From the sequence record NC_019401.1: a DNA stretch of 64,000 bases. One strand, given 5' to 3'. The position numbers were made by a program, and so were the translations under genes. Under the pieces are notes generated by a model. That model was not told the DNA's origin. It made no database searches and saw only the letters and a list, made by a program, of their open reading frames with translations. Shown here one piece after another: positions 3,857 to 57,795 of the stretch. The first letter of the stretch is position 1. Each line of letters begins with the position of its first letter.

Positions 3857-4150
3857 ATGAAAAGTATTCTATTTTTCCAATACGCTGCCACTGGTGAAGG
3901 TTGGACAACAGAAATTCGTTTCTGTAATCAATCCAGAATTAGTGACGAACAAGCTATTGAAGAATTCAAACAGCGTCATCACGAGTACTTTCACTGTGGT
4001 ATAGAAATGCATAACATTGATGAAGCGAAGGAAGATAAACACTTCCTACAACATTTACAAGAACATGTACCTGCTTTACATCGTTATGTTTTGGGAAATC
4101 GTGATTGTTTAATTGATATTGACTACGTGCATTACGTCAATTTTTCATAA
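3857..4150 (+). CDS. hypothetical protein
   Basis: GAGG RBS; ORF track. Confidence 0.7.
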   Translation: MKSILFFQYAATGEGWTTEIRFCNQSRISDEQAIEEFKQRHHEYFHCGIEMHNIDEAKEDKHFLQHLQEHVPALHRYVLGNRDCLIDIDYVHYVNFS

Positions 4151-4227
4151 AAATCATTGACTTGTACCGTTTGGGATGATACAATATTTTAACTGGTTTG
4201 AAATAAAAAAGTTAATGAGAGGTTATC

Positions 4228-4506
4228 ATGAGAAACGGTATTGGTATGCGTATTCAGATTATGCCAGGCGGTATCGTTATTGGTCATGTAATACCTAGTG
4301 ACCATCCTGCAAACAACGGTGTAATTGAATTAATTGAAAATCATGTATATGAATTGCGTGGCGAATCAACTTTTGACACTACATCATTTCATGATATTGG
4401 CGAAGCCGATGTGAAAATGTTTGACATAGAATCTGGTGGTTGTAGTCTGGACAAATTCATTGCTTTGGCGGGCGGCAAACATCTTACTGTGAATAACGGA
4501 AAATAA
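4228..4506 (+). CDS. hypothetical protein
   Basis: GAGG RBS; TTGACT..TACAAT promoter upstream. Confidence 0.7.
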   Translation: MRNGIGMRIQIMPGGIVIGHVIPSDHPANNGVIELIENHVYELRGESTFDTTSFHDIGEADVKMFDIESGGCSLDKFIALAGGKHLTVNNGK

Positions 4507-4508
4507 CT

Positions 4509-4706
4509 ATGAAAGTACAGTGGATTAAAATTAAAAATCCAGATGATATGCAATTCTTCGCTGGAAAGATTTATCCAAAAGATAAAGATGACTATCAATA
4601 TATCGAAGATGAATTTGGTACGCAGTACTCGGTAAGTCCTGATGGACTTAAAGAACTTCAGAATTTCGGATGGGAAATTGAGGTACAATATGAAAGTATA
4701 CATTGA
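4509..4706 (+). CDS. hypothetical protein
   Basis: ORF track; tiles with neighbours. Confidence 0.6.
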   Translation: MKVQWIKIKNPDDMQFFAGKIYPKDKDDYQYIEDEFGTQYSVSPDGLKELQNFGWEIEVQYESIH

Positions 4707-5055
4707 TGATATTCGTGATCCTCAAAAGTACTTGACTGCTGAACAAGCTGAAGGTATTGTATGGCTCAAAGAATGGTGGGAAGCAAAACGTTTTTTGATT
4801 GAACATTCTTCTGAAATTGAAGTAATTCATTTCGATCATTATATGGATGAACCAACTTTAACTGGTACTGATCTGTTTATGATGGTTGCGGGTGATTGCA
4901 TGTGGGGTGATAAAGAACATTGGCCTAATGTGAAAACCATTTATCTTCATTCTTCGGATGAAGACCATATTGAAGAATTGATGGAAAACTATGCAGAACC
5001 TATGCATAAGGCTGGTGTAGAAGTTATCAATAATAGTCAGAGGAATAATTACTGA
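4690..5055 (+). CDS. cyclic-phosphate-processing receiver (cREC-like) domain protein, copy 1
   Basis: MKVYIDDIR...W...IHFDHYM...TGTD pattern; start moved to ATG 4690 (GAGG RBS). Confidence 0.7.
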   Translation: MKVYIDDIRDPQKYLTAEQAEGIVWLKEWWEAKRFLIEHSSEIEVIHFDHYMDEPTLTGTDLFMMVAGDCMWGDKEHWPNVKTIYLHSSDEDHIEELMENYAEPMHKAGVEVINNSQRNNY

Positions 5056-5411
5056 TGAAAGTATATGTTGATGATATTCGTAATCCAGAAAACCATCTCA
5101 GTGCTGAACAGGCCGAAGGAATCCACTGGAAAAAAGAATGGTGGGAAGCAAAGAACTTTATCTTCGATAACTGCGAAGAAATTGAAACTATTCATCTGGA
5201 TAATTTCTTAGGTGATAGTACACATACTGGTGCAGATATACTTCGTATGATAACTCGTAGTTTAAAACGAGGTATGTTCCCTAAACTGAAACAAATTTAT
5301 ATTCACAGTTCTGACAAAGAAGTTGTGAATAATTTATATAACTCTCAGATCGAGCGTTGTAAAGAAGCAGGTGTTGAGTTAATAAAAAACTCACGTCCTA
5401 ATCGTACTTAA
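5055..5411 (+). CDS. cyclic-phosphate-processing receiver (cREC-like) domain protein, copy 2
   Basis: MKVYVDDIR...IHLDNFLG...TGAD...IYIHS; tandem paralogue of 4690-5055. Confidence 0.7.
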   Translation: MKVYVDDIRNPENHLSAEQAEGIHWKKEWWEAKNFIFDNCEEIETIHLDNFLGDSTHTGADILRMITRSLKRGMFPKLKQIYIHSSDKEVVNNLYNSQIERCKEAGVELIKNSRPNRT

Positions 5412-16682: not shown

Positions 16683-16754
16683 GCATCCATCGTATATCGG
16701 CTATTATAATTGGCTTCCACCCAATAGAACGGAGTTCGACCCTCCGTGGATGCT
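16683..16754 (+). tRNA. tRNA-Gly(TCC)
   Basis: GCATCCA/TGGATGC; ATTGG-CTTCCAC-CCAAT; U73. Confidence 0.93.
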
Positions 16755-16874
16755 CAAAATTTAACAAAACAATATAAGGTAAATTATATGCTATAGAATC
16801 CTAGTACTGGTCCTCCTGATAAGTTTAATTCAGAACAAACTACTAAATTAAACAATATCAAAAAGGAACATATT

Positions 16875-23546: not shown

Positions 23547-23619
23547 ACCTCGTTAACTCAGTTGGTAGAGTAACGGTCTTTTAAACCGTGAGTCGCTGGT
23601 TCGAACCCAGCACGAGGTA
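23547..23619 (+). tRNA. tRNA-Lys(TTT), uninterrupted
   Basis: ACCTCGT/ACGAGGT; ACGGT-CTTTTAA-ACCGT. Confidence 0.93.
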
Positions 23620-23637
23620 CTAATATTAAGGAATATA

Positions 23638-53180: not shown

Positions 53181-53960
53181 ATGAATACAAAAATCTGCTC
53201 CACTTGTAAACTTTCTAAAAGTATTGATGAATTCTATTATTTGAAATCTGAAAATCGTTACCGAAGTAATTGCAAAAAATGCTCTAATATTTCTTCTAAA
53301 TTAACTCGTAAAGTAAAAGATAAAACAAACTTTAATACGTTGTTAGAGAAAAAAGAATATAATAGAAAATTAATACATCGAATAAAAGTACTGAAAGGAT
53401 GCTATGTTTGTGGTGTCAAGTTCAGTGAGTGCTTAGATCTACATCACGTCAATAAAGACGAAAAGGAAATGACTCCATCTGCAATGACATCTAAAAGTAC
53501 TGAATTTGTTAGAAGTGAATTACGTAAATGTGTTGTGTTATGCACTAATCATCATCGTATGGTTCATTCAGGTAGGATTGAAATATATAAAAAATGGTTG
53601 ACTTGGGTCAGCCATTTTGCTATTGTAGAAGTAATGAAATGTCTGACTGAGGTCAATAAAATGAACGTTAAAATCGAACTGAACCAGATCTTTACAAAAG
53701 AACGCCTTATCAAAGAGCTTAAACATATCGTTGAAAATATCGAACGTTTCGACCGTTATGACCCAATTCGCCATGTTCCAATTCAAGGTACTGTTACAGT
53801 GGCGAAGGAAGGTGAATTCGCCAAGTACGCATTGTTAGATCGCCGGAATGATCGGGTCATTCGTTACTACTCTGACGACGAATATAAAAATGGCTCAATT
53901 GAACAATACGATCATGTTACCCAATGTTTGATTGAAATCGAAACCAACACGATAGTATAA
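53181..53960 (+). CDS. HNH endonuclease reading in frame into a separate downstream gene (ATG 53661)
   Basis: CxxC..CxxC, CYVCG..LDLHH..C..LC.NHHRMVH; internal terminator/promoter at 53595-53626 and GAGG-ATG at 53661. Confidence 0.7.
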   Translation: MNTKICSTCKLSKSIDEFYYLKSENRYRSNCKKCSNISSKLTRKVKDKTNFNTLLEKKEYNRKLIHRIKVLKGCYVCGVKFSECLDLHHVNKDEKEMTPSAMTSKSTEFVRSELRKCVVLCTNHHRMVHSGRIEIYKKWLTWVSHFAIVEVMKCLTEVNKMNVKIELNQIFTKERLIKELKHIVENIERFDRYDPIRHVPIQGTVTVAKEGEFAKYALLDRRNDRVIRYYSDDEYKNGSIEQYDHVTQCLIEIETNTIV

Positions 53961-54015
53961 AAATCTATTTTGAACCTTCAACATCACGTTTAAAAGTTTA
54001 AAGAATAAAGAAAAA

Positions 54016-54048
54016 GGGGTTGACTTCGGTCAGCCCTTTTGATATTCT
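54016..54048 (+). promoter_or_regulatory. composite terminator/promoter
   Basis: GGGGTTGAC-TTCG-GTCAGCCC-TTTT; TTGACT-N17-TATTCT. Confidence 0.75.
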
Positions 54049-54100: not shown

Positions 54101-54559
54101 ATGACTCATATCGTCTATAACACCCTTTTTAATAGTTTAAACAAACCGTTGGTTAACATTACTGTAGAAGATGAAGCTCTACAATATGCACTCGAAACAA
54201 ATTCAGCAATTGGTGGGATGGCTCCTTTTGTTTTCAGTAAACTACTTTTAAAAGATAAAAATCCATCGATTGTTGAACATGGAAAAGGTCTATGCATTAC
54301 TATTCCGGGTGATAATAAAAAGTATAAATGCATCATCTATTCAAATGAATCTGGTTCTTTGAATGATACTAAGATGCGTAGTAAATTGATCAATCAGGGT
54401 TTTCATAAACTTAATATTGATGGTGATACTTCATCTCTTTCACCTATTAAAGACGGTGATGTTTTCTTAATTGCACATTATACATCGAAAGATAAAAATT
54501 TAAAATACGCTGGTGAATTTTCAGTGGAATCTATTTTAAAGGTTGTTGATAAAAAATGA
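54101..54559 (+). CDS. hypothetical protein, first gene of the DUF262 operon (possibly PUA/SRA-like)
   Basis: AGGA RBS; ATGA overlap with DUF262; C-terminal KYAGEFSV. Confidence 0.65.
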   Translation: MTHIVYNTLFNSLNKPLVNITVEDEALQYALETNSAIGGMAPFVFSKLLLKDKNPSIVEHGKGLCITIPGDNKKYKCIIYSNESGSLNDTKMRSKLINQGFHKLNIDGDTSSLSPIKDGDVFLIAHYTSKDKNLKYAGEFSVESILKVVDKK

Positions 54560-55740
54560 AAAACATTGTTCAAGATTGTAAAATGGTGAGTATTCGTGAA
54601 TTAATGGATATTAAACTTACAATTCCTCACTATCAGCGTGAAAACACATGGAGTATTAAACAGAAGCAGTTCTTGTTAGATTCAATAATTAAAGGTTATC
54701 CAATAACTTCGTTTCTTTTATGTAAATCTAATGAAGAACTAAGTTTTGATTTAGTTGATGCGAAGCATCGTTATCAGACTATTTGTGAATTTAAAAATAA
54801 TAAACTACCATACACATTTTATAACGATGATGGTAAGCGTATAAACCTGTTTTATGGGACTGATGATGAATCTGAAAAAGAGATTATATACAATTCGTAT
54901 AATAATGTATCTATCATGAGTTCTGATATGCGGGCGGCGTTTGATTCTTACAATATTATTTTACAAATATTCAGTTCCGAAGATTACGAAGTTAATGCGG
55001 AAATTTTCAAGCGTGTAAACACATCAGGTAAAAAAGCAAATAAAGCTGAAATCAAAGCCAGCCAAACATCTGGATCTGACTATCATGTAATGCTAAACAG
55101 CATTTTAAAAGCTTCTGAAAATATTTCACCTAACCTTAAATTGAAAGTATTAAACTTCTTTGAGTGTTTAGATAAAGAAAAAACTGGAACAACTGACCTA
55201 CGTTATAGTCGTTTAACTAACGATAAAAGTATTAAAAGTTTGAAATATAGCAATATTTTTCATAAAATTGAAGTGTATTGTAGTATTGCTAAGAATATCG
55301 TGGAACACATCTCTGAACCATATGATAAATTGATTTTTAAAATACCGAATATTAATTTGGCAATCGATGAAATTATTGATTCAAAGTTTGAATTATCTGA
55401 AATGGACGCGATCCATGATTTTAATACTATGTACAATGATTTATTAAAGGCTGTTGGATATTTCGGAGGGAAGTTTTCCATTAATAAGAAAACTTTCAAT
55501 GAAACAATGATGTGTGTGTTTACTGCTTTGGTCAAAGAACGTTCAAGTGAAATTGGTCCAATGTTTAGTTCTTATTGGATAAAGAACCTTGATACTATGT
55601 GCAAACAGGCAGAGACTTATTTTCCGCATAAATCACTTGACAGTGCTGGTAGTATAGTTCGTGCATTTAAATTCGTAAACGAATATTTTGATTATGCAAT
55701 TAATAAAGTTGAAATCGGCGGTGACGAGGTGGGAAAGTAG
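54556..55740 (+). CDS. DUF262 (GmrS/ParB-like) domain protein
   Basis: IPHYQR..W...LLDSIIKGYPI...VDAKHR (variant of DGQQR). Confidence 0.8.
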   Translation: MKNIVQDCKMVSIRELMDIKLTIPHYQRENTWSIKQKQFLLDSIIKGYPITSFLLCKSNEELSFDLVDAKHRYQTICEFKNNKLPYTFYNDDGKRINLFYGTDDESEKEIIYNSYNNVSIMSSDMRAAFDSYNIILQIFSSEDYEVNAEIFKRVNTSGKKANKAEIKASQTSGSDYHVMLNSILKASENISPNLKLKVLNFFECLDKEKTGTTDLRYSRLTNDKSIKSLKYSNIFHKIEVYCSIAKNIVEHISEPYDKLIFKIPNINLAIDEIIDSKFELSEMDAIHDFNTMYNDLLKAVGYFGGKFSINKKTFNETMMCVFTALVKERSSEIGPMFSSYWIKNLDTMCKQAETYFPHKSLDSAGSIVRAFKFVNEYFDYAINKVEIGGDEVGK

Positions 55741-55964
55741 AAAAGAGGCGTTCACTTTATAACTTAAAATCGTTGCTGTTATTGAGTCATAAATATTGTT
55801 ATCTGTGTGATTTAAAATTCAAACCCACTGATTCAATAAATGTTGACCACTTTATTTCTCTTGCAATTGGTGGTTCAAACAAAATAACGAACTTGCGACC
55901 TACACATGAACGATGTAATAAAATAAAAGGAATTAGGATAATCAATTTAAAGGGAATTATATGA
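55725..55964 (+). CDS. HNH domain in the -1 frame (no good independent start)
   Basis: CYLC...VDHFISLAIGGSNKITNLRPTHERCNKIKG; frame opens after TGA at 55722-24. Confidence 0.75.
   Translation, partial: RGGKVEKRRSLYNLKSLLLLSHKYCYLCDLKFKPTDSINVDHFISLAIGGSNKITNLRPTHERCNKIKGIRIINLKGII
55731..55737 (+). promoter_or_regulatory. candidate -1 ribosomal frameshift heptamer G-GGA-AAG
   Basis: In the correct register immediately before TAG; the -1 frame is open into the HNH domain. Confidence 0.6.
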
Positions 55965-56794
55965 GTATTAAAAATAAGTTGGATCAGTACTACACAAATC
56001 CAGATTATGCAAAATATTGTTTCGATATAAGTCAATCAATTATATCTGAAAAGATGAATGTTGAATCATGTTTCTATTTGGAACCTTGTGTCGGTACTGG
56101 TTCTTTTTATAAACTCTTTCCAGAGGGTAGAAAATTTGGGTTCGATATTGAACCTGTTTATGTTGACGATAATGTGATAAAAGCTGACTTTTTAGAAGAA
56201 ATGTTTGTGAACCAGAAATGTCCAAACTCTGATATGATTGTTATTAGTAACCCACCATTCGGGCGGCTATCATCGCTTGCAGTTAAATTCTTTAATAAAT
56301 GTGCAAATATTAAAGAAGTAAAATATATTTCATTCATAGTACCTATGACTTTTAGAAAGGTTGCAACTCAGAATAAATTACATGAGAATTTTCATTTAAT
56401 CTACGATGAGATTTCACCGCATGATTCGTTTATACTACATGGAGAACCTCATCATGTACCATGTGTTCTACAAATTTGGGAACGCAGGGATCATGAAATT
56501 CGTGCTAAACATAAAATAAAAAATGAATCCGAATATTTCACATACTGTACAAAAGATGAAGCGGATTTATACATTAAGCGTGTCGGAACTAAAGCGGGAG
56601 AAATAGCAGAACCAGGAACAGAACATAAAGACGCTAGTATGTACTACATAAAAACAGATCATAAAGATAAAATATATCAAATTATGAACAGTGCATCTTA
56701 CTTAACTGATATTAAAGCTATTCGCCAAACGACTGCTGGCGTATACTGTGTTTCAAAGTCTGAACTTGTTATAAACATTGAAAAATACTGGTAA
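55961..56794 (+). CDS. N6-adenine DNA methyltransferase
   Basis: DQYYT, LEPCVGTG motif I, DFL, NPPF motif IV; ATGA overlap with HNH. Confidence 0.85.
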   Translation: MSIKNKLDQYYTNPDYAKYCFDISQSIISEKMNVESCFYLEPCVGTGSFYKLFPEGRKFGFDIEPVYVDDNVIKADFLEEMFVNQKCPNSDMIVISNPPFGRLSSLAVKFFNKCANIKEVKYISFIVPMTFRKVATQNKLHENFHLIYDEISPHDSFILHGEPHHVPCVLQIWERRDHEIRAKHKIKNESEYFTYCTKDEADLYIKRVGTKAGEIAEPGTEHKDASMYYIKTDHKDKIYQIMNSASYLTDIKAIRQTTAGVYCVSKSELVINIEKYW

Positions 56795-56805
56795 TTTAGA
56801 AAAAA

Positions 56806-56838
56806 GGGGTTGACTTCGGTCAGCCCTTTTGTTATTAT
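56806..56838 (+). promoter_or_regulatory. composite terminator/promoter
   Basis: GGGGTTGAC-TTCG-GTCAGCCC-TTTT; TTGACT-N17-TATTAT. Confidence 0.75.
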
Positions 56839-56880: not shown

Positions 56881-57795
56881 ATGAAAGTGCTGAACTGTCG
56901 TAATGTTAAATTCAAAGGTGAATTCGTTCTGAATAACATCACTTCATTACGTAAGAATTATAAATTTAATTCTGGAGTTTTGGCTTTGATCGAAGTAGCT
57001 AAACGTGATGGATTGAAATGTGATACCTGTGGGAACTGCGACATACACTTTAAATTAATTCCCGAATCCGGTATGGCTATGTTTATGGGTAAGGTTCGTA
57101 TGACACGTGACCATGACCTTCTGAATTCTCTGAATGGCTCAGATGATGTTGATAACCAGCATCTTCTTTGTGAGGACTGCAATCAACTACGTGGCAATCG
57201 ATTTGCTCAGTATAAAGAATTTAAAGACTGGTATGAAAGCGTCATTGCTGAAGGAAAAGATCCTAAAAAAGTAGTTAATAAATTAAATCGTAATTTTTCA
57301 TATACAGATTATGAAAAGAATGGTTACTCTAATAAAAACCCAATTCAAATAGTTCAAAAAGATGTTATGCCTGATTATCTTAAAGAAGGATTAACTAAAC
57401 ACTTCTTAAAACATAATGCATTTCGTGTAACAAAAGATTTTTATAGTCTCAGTACTATGTATTCATATACAGAAAAAGCCTGGGATGACTTTCTTAACGA
57501 ACTTATGGTACTTGTAGTTAAACATCGTACTAATAAAATTACACCAGTAAACAACAATAAATTTAGTGTTTATAAGTACAAGAAGTCTAATAAGTCTTTA
57601 GAAACATTCCTGCTCCATCTTAACACTGCGTTTAAAAAAGAATATCAAGAACGCAAAAAGGTAGCAGTCGATGTTACTGAACAGAGTTTTACTGTAATTC
57701 CAGTTCAAGAAGAACAATCAATCGCTAAGGTATCAGTATTCAGTAATATACTGCAACGGTTTAAAAATATGTTCCAGACATTTGTGGCAGCATAA
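56881..57795 (+). CDS. HNH-domain protein (paralogue of 49983-50480)
   Basis: CDTCG...RDHDLLNSLNGSDDVDNQHLLCEDCNQLRGN. Confidence 0.8.
   Translation: MKVLNCRNVKFKGEFVLNNITSLRKNYKFNSGVLALIEVAKRDGLKCDTCGNCDIHFKLIPESGMAMFMGKVRMTRDHDLLNSLNGSDDVDNQHLLCEDCNQLRGNRFAQYKEFKDWYESVIAEGKDPKKVVNKLNRNFSYTDYEKNGYSNKNPIQIVQKDVMPDYLKEGLTKHFLKHNAFRVTKDFYSLSTMYSYTEKAWDDFLNELMVLVVKHRTNKITPVNNNKFSVYKYKKSNKSLETFLLHLNTAFKKEYQERKKVAVDVTEQSFTVIPVQEEQSIAKVSVFSNILQRFKNMFQTFVAA

Follow-up and report, generated by a model that had tools for sequence, protein, structure and literature searches.

Cronobacter phage vB_CsaM_GAP32 (GAP32) is a jumbo myovirus of the genus Mimasvirus with a genome of 358 kb. In a stretch of 64,000 nucleotides (nt) of its record NC_019401.1, hereafter the window, whose positions serve as coordinates throughout, both GenBank records annotate three genes across the region considered here: GAP32_517 (hypothetical), GAP32_518, which encodes a DUF262 protein, and GAP32_519, which encodes a putative N6-adenine methyltransferase (MTase). 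The 220-nt gap that extends from GAP32_518 to GAP32_519 holds a reading frame for an HNH nuclease domain that has no annotation in GenBank. In this work we analyzed how this frame could be expressed, and the comparison of the locus with its relatives strongly supports a programmed −1 ribosomal frameshift at the end of the DUF262 gene.

The DUF262 gene occupies positions 54556..55740 on the plus strand, as do all the features described below, and its 0-frame product has 394 amino acids (aa) and no nuclease domain. Read directly in the sequence, the 3' end of this open reading frame (ORF) is GTG GGA AAG TAG, which places the slippery heptamer G GGA AAG (55731..55737), the proposed slip site, in the X XXY YYZ register of the DUF262 frame and the stop codon TAG (55738..55740), a candidate slow A-site codon, directly 3' of it. 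The −1 frame opens at 55725, after the TGA at 55722-24, and stays open to the TGA at 55962-64. The HNH extension (55737..55964) comprises 75 codons plus this TGA, and encodes a basic helical linker (VEKRR...) followed by an HNH (beta-beta-alpha-Me) domain. The reading after a slip would be GK|VEKRR..., and the 394 residues of the 0-frame plus the 75 of the extension give a protein of 469 aa. The register of the heptamer, the limits of the −1 frame and both protein sizes agree with an earlier reading of this DNA (the original prediction), made from the letters alone. As a bare heptamer, GGGAAAG shows no enrichment in the window (7 copies vs 4.4 expected). Nonetheless, when the ORFs of at least 100 aa called mechanically in the window were screened for a slippery heptamer in register within the last 15 codons together with a −1 extension of at least 50 codons, one out of 93 showed this combination, and it was the DUF262 gene.

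Relatives were collected by tblastn against phage records, two word-indexed protein searches, scans of viral and metagenome contigs, and a profile search of 1.84 billion representative proteins, and the DNA of each relative was read. Megablast against the phage records recovered GAP32 itself alone, the genome-contig scan gave no relatives, and the viral-contig scans with the queries A3 and P0010 gave no additional ones. The collection includes 12 distinct gene variants in seven lineages, with 16-30% amino-acid identity between lineages; since the lineages share ancestry, the 12 variants are not 12 independent events, and most of the relatives are unverified metagenome assemblies. Contigs are referred to by L numbers. 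In L004, which is 91% identical to GAP32, the 0-frame ends in TTG GGA AAG TAG, and in L006/L008, from an uncultured phage of 355 kb (61% to GAP32), in TCG GGA AAG TAA. Escherichia phage ph0011, an Asteriusvirus whose protein is 22% identical to that of GAP32, ends in GTG GGA AAG TGA, as does L020 from the same clade; two further members of the ph0011 clade read GTG GGA AAG CCC TAA (L022) and GTG GGA AAG CCC followed by five more codons and TAA (L025). The separate lineages are represented by L036 and L037 (both GTG GGA AAG TAA), L038 (GAG GGA AAG TAG), L039/L040 (GTA AAG AAC TAA) and L041 (GCA AAG TAA).

The HNH domain lies in the −1 frame, and in no other, in all 12 variants, and the frame is open from the slip site on. 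The heptamer is found in register in 10 of the 12, and an in-register A AAG in every one. A stop codon directly follows the heptamer in eight of the ten variants that carry it, with TAG, TAA and TGA all represented; the other two have CCC at this place, and their stop is shifted one (L022) or six codons (L025) downstream. The codon before the heptamer varies (GTG, TTG, TCG, GAG) with a constant G in its third position. Among the ten heptamer-bearing genes there are 24 invariant amino-acid columns with degenerate codons, and a single codon is used throughout only for the GGA and AAG of the heptamer, whereas several codons are in use in the other invariant glycine and lysine columns. AAG is the sole codon identical across all 12 genes, third positions are invariant in 1.4% of the columns overall, and the heptamer is the sole invariant 7-nt block in the junction alignment of seven variants. 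Conservation of the heptamer, which had been proposed as a check of the original prediction, extends at synonymous positions to homologues with ~20% identity. As judged from these alignments, the signal at the junction is one that acts at the nucleotide level and not through the protein alone.

Maintenance of GGGAAAG for some other reason, with the HNH domain made in another way, has very little probability. The constraint might lie in the protein, for example a required C-terminal Gly-Lys together with a bias in codon usage, or in the nucleic acid, where the letters could form a processing signal or a site for a nuclease or MTase. Gly-Lys is indeed C-terminal in 10 of the 12 variants, so that some constraint at the protein level is possible. 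This explanation has to account for the several codons used in invariant glycine and lysine columns elsewhere, for the fixed wobble G of a preceding codon that is itself variable, for the heptamer kept in L022 and L025 even though Gly-Lys is no longer at the C-terminus, and for the in-register A AAG that L039/L040 and L041, which do not have the heptamer, still keep just before the stop.

In the ph0011 clade, a motif AGCGTGGGAAA is repeated a few codons past the slip site (L025 3688-3724, L022 3399-3420), and in L025 the repeat makes a second in-register heptamer, G GGA AAC, right before the stop. A short stretch with the slip site seems to have been duplicated in tandem.

The −1 frame has the properties of a coding region. 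The ratio of nonsynonymous to synonymous substitution rates (dN/dS) in seven pairwise comparisons is 0.14-0.31, which denotes purifying selection, and conservation starts right after the slip site, including an invariant arginine and a predicted helix. The residues C..C, DH, GG, N and H..CN of the HNH domain, which comprise all the catalytic and zinc-binding residues, are invariant in the 12 variants. These results bear on the view that the gene is decaying, i.e. that a 1-nt indel interrupted an ancestral in-frame DUF262-HNH gene and that the HNH piece is a non-functional remnant. In-frame fusions do occur in more distant relatives (see below), and the piece is unannotated in GenBank; a remnant, however, would not be expected to keep an open frame and every catalytic residue in 12 variants from lineages that have diverged to saturation at synonymous sites, nor would the break always be −1 and always at the same slippery codon, and we regard decay as most improbable. 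An indel introduced into the GAP32 record by an error of sequencing or assembly, a generic possibility for any single genome with nothing specific in its favour here, is effectively refuted: the same arrangement appears in 12 independent assemblies, from isolates and metagenomes, and the site has no homopolymer longer than 3 nt.

From the layout of the junction and its conservation we consider it very likely that a programmed −1 ribosomal frameshift at G GGA AAG fuses the DUF262 protein to the HNH domain, so that two proteins would be made from one mRNA. The core claim of the original prediction, a lambda-type frameshift at this heptamer, is supported by every comparative test that had been named for it. 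Standard decoding of GAP32_518 would yield the 394-aa DUF262 protein without nuclease, while a fraction of the ribosomes at 55731-37 would slip back one base to GGG AAA, by tandem slippage of tRNA-Gly UCC and tRNA-Lys UUU, and then read GUA GAA AAG AGG CGU... up to 55961. The slip product would be a DUF262-linker-HNH protein of 469 aa, the sole form that carries the nuclease. The slow A-site codon after the heptamer (a stop in eight variants, CCC in two) may give time for the slip, with no RNA structure involved, and the efficiency would probably be below 1% to a few per cent. The short form would be the major product, and could act with the rare long form or restrain it, as OrfA does with OrfAB in the insertion sequence (IS) family IS3, which would result in a low nuclease dosage.

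For the efficiency of −1 frameshifting in E. coli, G_GG.A_AA.G has been reported to rank in the top three heptamers (PMC4066793; PMC5009743). The tRNA cluster of GAP32 (18 tRNA genes, window positions 1512-29925) includes tRNA-Gly(UCC) at 16683-16755 and tRNA-Lys(UUU) at 23547-23620, decoders of GGA and AAG, and the presence of these two tRNAs is consistent with the proposed slip, not diagnostic of it. In the predicted junction peptide ...GDEVGKVEKRR, trypsin would cut at the junction lysine. Transcriptional slippage was also considered as the source of the fusion and was rejected, given that no run of a single base in the conserved site exceeds 3 nt and that conservation does not extend to the A-runs nearby.

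Several points weigh against a frameshift of this kind. L039/L040 and L041 do not have the full heptamer and keep only the weaker tetramer A AAG. No conserved downstream RNA structure was detected, either in the fold of the GAP32 sequence (z = +0.8 vs shuffles) or in that of the seven-sequence alignment (0 pairs), and the adjacent stop or CCC is the sole recurrent feature of the context; a stimulatory element, either a hairpin or pseudoknot downstream or an SD-like sequence upstream, is frequent at −1 sites of this type without being obligatory. The Shine-Dalgarno (SD)-like GGCGGTGA that the original prediction placed upstream of the heptamer does exist in GAP32 at 55717-24 (considered also in the form GAGGTG) and partly in L004; it is absent from the other lineages, and so does not stand as a conserved stimulator. 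In reporters, V_VV.A_AA.G heptamers without stimulators give ~0.3% frameshifting, which a favourable 3' context raises to ~3.7% (PMC4066793). The restriction-like role of the module, the protection by the MTase and the regulation by the short form, all discussed below or above, are matters that we infer. Finally, ph0011 and L020 have the letters AAGTGA, in which the stop is overlapped by a GTG, and an ATG is present in L040, so that independent initiation of the HNH frame is possible in those genomes.

The last point leads to an explanation in which the HNH domain is made alone, as a protein of ~60-75 aa, from an internal start such as TTG 55773 or by termination-reinitiation at the stop of the DUF262 gene, and acts in trans with the DUF262 protein. 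A gene caller did call an HNH protein of 70 aa in ph0011 and L020, where the GTG overlaps the stop, and one of 68 aa was called in L040, and in GAP32 both TTG 55773 and TTG 55782 are candidate starts. The GTG of ph0011 and L020, nonetheless, is a by-product of the succession of AAG and TGA, and no start codon for the HNH frame is conserved among the 12 variants. TTG 55773, from which the domain could have been translated, corresponds to CTG in L004 and to GTA in L006; L004 has no ATG, GTG or TTG at all ahead of the CxxC that includes the first zinc-binding cysteine, and the ATG of L040 is ATT in its near-identical sister L039. No SD-like sequence was found before any candidate start of the HNH frame, TTG 55773 included. 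Separate translation also gives no reason for the pattern of synonymous conservation, which within the gene is limited to GGA, AAG and the G before them, or for a linker whose conservation starts at the slip site. We therefore consider it improbable, although less so than decay of the gene, and favour the frameshift.

The properties of the two parts of the predicted fusion were explored by submitting the 0-frame DUF262 product and the −1 HNH piece to all tools as two separate sequences. The DUF262 product matches Pfam PF03235 (GmrSD_N/DUF262; E value 1.8e-17, residues 20-167) and phrog_1583 (E value 7e-141), and consists of a ParB/Srx-like DUF262 N-terminal domain and an alpha-helical C-terminal domain. 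The residues Q27, R28, D68, H71 and R72 are invariant in the seven-variant alignment, and the QR-containing nucleoside triphosphate (NTP)-binding motif of DUF262 is present. The AlphaFold model of this product has a predicted local distance difference test score (pLDDT) of 78, with the final six residues below 50. Its best fold and sequence matches, BrxU (7p9k, the best PDB match), SspE (6jiv) and ParB, are weak; the sequence match to BrxU is confined to residues 20-63, and Foldseek with the whole-protein model gave weak matches at best (E value 2e-3, template modelling (TM) score ~0.2). At the level of the model, this result supports the assignment to the DUF262 domain family, not a detailed architecture. 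In PADLOC the product matches NsnA, PD-T4-2_A and HEC-05.

The −1 piece matches Pfam PF01844 (HNH; E value 1.7e-9) and also PF14279. Its AlphaFold model has a pLDDT of 80 and a helix predicted confidently at residues 4-17, that is, in the part that lies upstream of TTG 55773. The top fold match of the model is the Gme HNH nicking endonuclease 4h9d (TM score 0.60, probability 1.0), which is also matched at the profile level (E value 3.6e-8), and Cas9 HNH domains were matched as well. PF07510 (DUF1524, GmrSD_C) gave no Pfam match in either piece. The statement in the original prediction that DUF262 plus HNH fusions define GmrSD/SspE-type nucleases was thus imprecise: the DUF262 domain is common to both, and the nuclease here is an HNH of PF01844, not DUF1524. 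For this reason, and on the basis of the domain matches, we do not file the predicted protein as a member of the GmrSD family. Its mode of action is probably similar to theirs, a sensor that binds NTP being coupled to a nuclease of the His-Me-finger type.

In-frame fusions, which had also been suggested as a check, are present in more distant relatives. A hidden Markov model built from the −1 HNH pieces matches, in frame, the C-terminal domain of 12 of the 150 best representatives recovered with the DUF262 profile, and eight of these 12 are 411-481 aa long. L012, a viral contig of 207 kb, encodes at 4143-5288 an in-frame protein of 421 aa with DUF262 and PF01844. Given these sizes, the predicted 469-aa transframe product has an architecture and a length that occur naturally in single ORFs. 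The in-frame metagenome proteins (P0075, P0158, P0183, P0060 and that of L012) share with it the order of the domains and a PF01844-type HNH at the extreme C-terminus; they differ in that they involve no recoding, are distant (DUF262 profile E values of ~1e-11 to 1e-14) and uncharacterised, and lie in other gene contexts. Immediately downstream of the gene in L012 there is a gene for a PCNA-like sliding clamp, and with such a neighbour this relative may have an unusual, for instance archaeal, range of hosts. A distant DUF262 protein of 413 aa was also found in the Ralstonia phage YO101_3 (Peduoviridae; L031 1318-3328), followed, with an overlap of 8 nt, by a RiboL-PSP HEPN protein of 258 aa; here the DUF262 sensor has a different effector as its partner, and the place is probably a P2-type defence hotspot.

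The DUF262 gene is tightly linked to its neighbours in GAP32, and both ATGA overlaps that had been described are present. The first gene, GAP32_517 (54101..54559, 152 aa), overlaps the DUF262 start at 54556-59, and the MTase gene, GAP32_519 (55961..56794, 277 aa, with the motifs EPCVGTGSF and NPPF), overlaps with its ATG the stop of the HNH frame at 55961-64. At least five lineages have, upstream of the DUF262 gene, a conserved gene for a protein of 136-155 aa related to the product of the first gene (six lineage members were aligned); that of GAP32 is homologous to the product of the upstream ORF of ph0011 (20% identity, E value 2e-7), and had no informative match in Pfam, NCBIfam, PHROGs or PADLOC. 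The MTase matches MTase_II of PADLOC (E value 3.7e-30) and phrog_5172. It is adjacent to the DUF262 gene in three of the seven lineages, namely the clades of GAP32 and ph0011 and L036, which has it on the upstream side and with 28% identity. L037 and L041 have no MTase at a distance of up to 2.5 kb from the gene, and the short flanks available for L038 and L039 have none either. The MTases of GAP32 and ph0011 are 69% identical, vs 22% for their DUF262 proteins. Genes of this MTase family stand alone, as orphans, in ~220 further phage records, and the family is also found in enterobacterial chromosomes. In the ph0011 clade ~50 nt separate the HNH stop from the MTase start and include a GC-rich hairpin, CTCCCCAAAGATGGGGAG (L003 4384-4401), whereas the two genes overlap by ATGA in the GAP32 clade. 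Chromosomal MTase homologues of Citrobacter farmeri (L032/L033 5001-5804) and Pseudescherichia (L034/L035 5001-5822), with ~60% identity, have serine recombinase genes or small phage-like ORFs as neighbours; no linked DUF262/HNH was found there, and these genes probably belong, as orphans, to prophages or integrative elements.

The cassette formed by the DUF262, HNH and MTase frames is bracketed by two exact 25-nt copies of a repeat hairpin, GGGGTTGACTTCGGTCAGCCCTTTT, at 54016-40 and 56806-30. Each copy forms a hairpin of 12 pairs in which a −35-like TTGACT is embedded, with a −10-like hexamer 17 nt downstream. The upstream boundary element (54013..54048) includes this terminator-like hairpin, TTGACT in the stem and TATTCT 17 nt later, with a promoter-like stretch at 54020-54048; the downstream element (56803..56838) is the second exact copy of the hairpin/promoter motif. 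Further copies with three mismatches each lie at 42215-39, 43647-71 and 44648-72, and near-identical copies of 34-47 nt occur in RaK2, Munch, 7t3, Muenster and even Brochothrix phage A9. In T4-type phages, PeSL elements, composites of a terminator hairpin and an early promoter, flank accessory genes as direct repeats (PMC2839356; PMC4122927). The repeats of GAP32 have this constitution by sequence, with a hairpin and a promoter motif repeated directly around accessory genes, and we propose that the upstream copy is likely the promoter of the cassette and the downstream copy likely its terminator. Two genes for free-standing HNH endonucleases, GAP32_516 (53181-53960) and GAP32_520 (56881-57795), flank the cassette; the former is absent at the corresponding place in the 61%-related phage contig L005, as expected of mobile homing-type genes.

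A search of 50,697 phage records showed the cassette in GAP32 and ph0011 alone, and it is absent from the site that it occupies in ph0011 in 121Q, UE-S1 and other Asteriusvirus phages; by this distribution the cassette is an accessory module. The first gene, the DUF262/HNH gene and, often, the adenine MTase would be expressed early and act on host DNA or on that of competing phages, and the MTase, where present, would mark the phage's own DNA. A different function can be envisaged, in which the cassette is a selfish homing-type element whose HNH nuclease cuts cassette-less sister genomes in mixed infections, with the MTase or the DUF262 protein giving protection and the PeSL-like repeats moving the cassette. 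Its sporadic distribution, the exact repeats that bracket it and the free-standing HNH endonuclease genes on its flanks would all fit; DUF262, however, is typical of defence nucleases and not of homing enzymes, as the PADLOC matches illustrate, and neither a target site nor an empty-site pair is defined for GAP32. We hold this function to be rather unlikely, and it is in any case compatible with the frameshift mechanism, not competing with it.

The frameshift proposed here can be compared with well-studied examples. The tail assembly chaperone pair G/GT of phage lambda uses the identical heptamer, a −1 shift and a C-terminal extension, with a major short and a minor long product, and no strong RNA stimulator is known there, as none was found here. 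In contrast, in GAP32 the gene class is an accessory nuclease module, the extension is a catalytic domain, and in the family the 0-frame stop usually abuts the heptamer. In the OrfA/OrfAB genes of IS3 and IS911, with A AAA AAG or similar sites, the −1 shift also appends a DNA-cleaving domain to an N-terminal DNA-handling module in mobile DNA, and regulation of the long product has been attributed to the short one. IS elements make use of G GGA AAG as well as of the tetramer A AAG (PMC4066793). The IS elements usually have a pseudoknot, a hairpin or an SD stimulator and a long overlap of the ORFs, whereas here the overlap is 2-7 codons with no conserved structure, and the protein families are unrelated. 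The type IV restriction enzymes GmrSD, BrxU and SspE, whose cleavage depends on DNA modification (hmC, glucosyl-hmC or phosphorothioate), have, like the predicted fusion, an N-terminal DUF262 (PF03235), a helical region and a C-terminal His-Me-finger-type nuclease; theirs is DUF1524 (PF07510) in single in-frame bacterial polypeptides of ~560-600 aa or more, whereas the GAP32 form is phage-encoded, has a PF01844 HNH and a predicted length of 469 aa, and is split by the frameshift. As in type II restriction-modification operons, the nuclease gene is tightly linked to, and translationally overlapped with, that of a type II-like adenine MTase; in contrast with such operons, the linkage is limited to three of the seven lineages and the MTase family is an orphan in so many other phages.

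A programmed −1 frameshift in a DUF262/GmrSD-like or HNH nuclease gene was not reported in the searchable literature, which did not cover subscription-only papers. The event described here defines a new recoded gene family, and the mechanism is of a kind already known. To our knowledge, phages offer few well-supported cases of programmed −1 frameshifting apart from those in IS transposases, in tail-assembly chaperones and in a small number of capsid and polymerase genes. In every genome that we examined, gene callers either miss the HNH frame or call it as a small ORF that is spurious, and the true domain architecture of phrog_1583 is therefore invisible in the databases. The site is minimal, formed by the heptamer and an adjacent stop with no RNA structure, and has an unusually clean comparative support, so that it may be a convenient model to study slippage next to a stop codon. 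With regard to phage defence, the arrangement shows that a DUF262 sensor is separable from its nuclease by recoding, from which it follows that the form without nuclease would have its own function and that selection acts on the dosage of the nuclease.

It can be speculated, although we give this little weight, that the frameshift is a device for stoichiometry and safety, with abundant DUF262-only and rare DUF262-HNH subunits, so that each complex would have at most one HNH domain that cuts a single strand. In the GAP32 clade the shifted ribosomes would, in addition, stop on the start of the MTase gene, coupling the synthesis of the MTase to that of the nuclease; since the ATGA overlap belongs to the GAP32 clade and the ph0011 clade has the ~50-nt gap, any such coupling would be specific to one clade. 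If true, this would represent a new control logic, by recoding, for a restriction-modification-like module.

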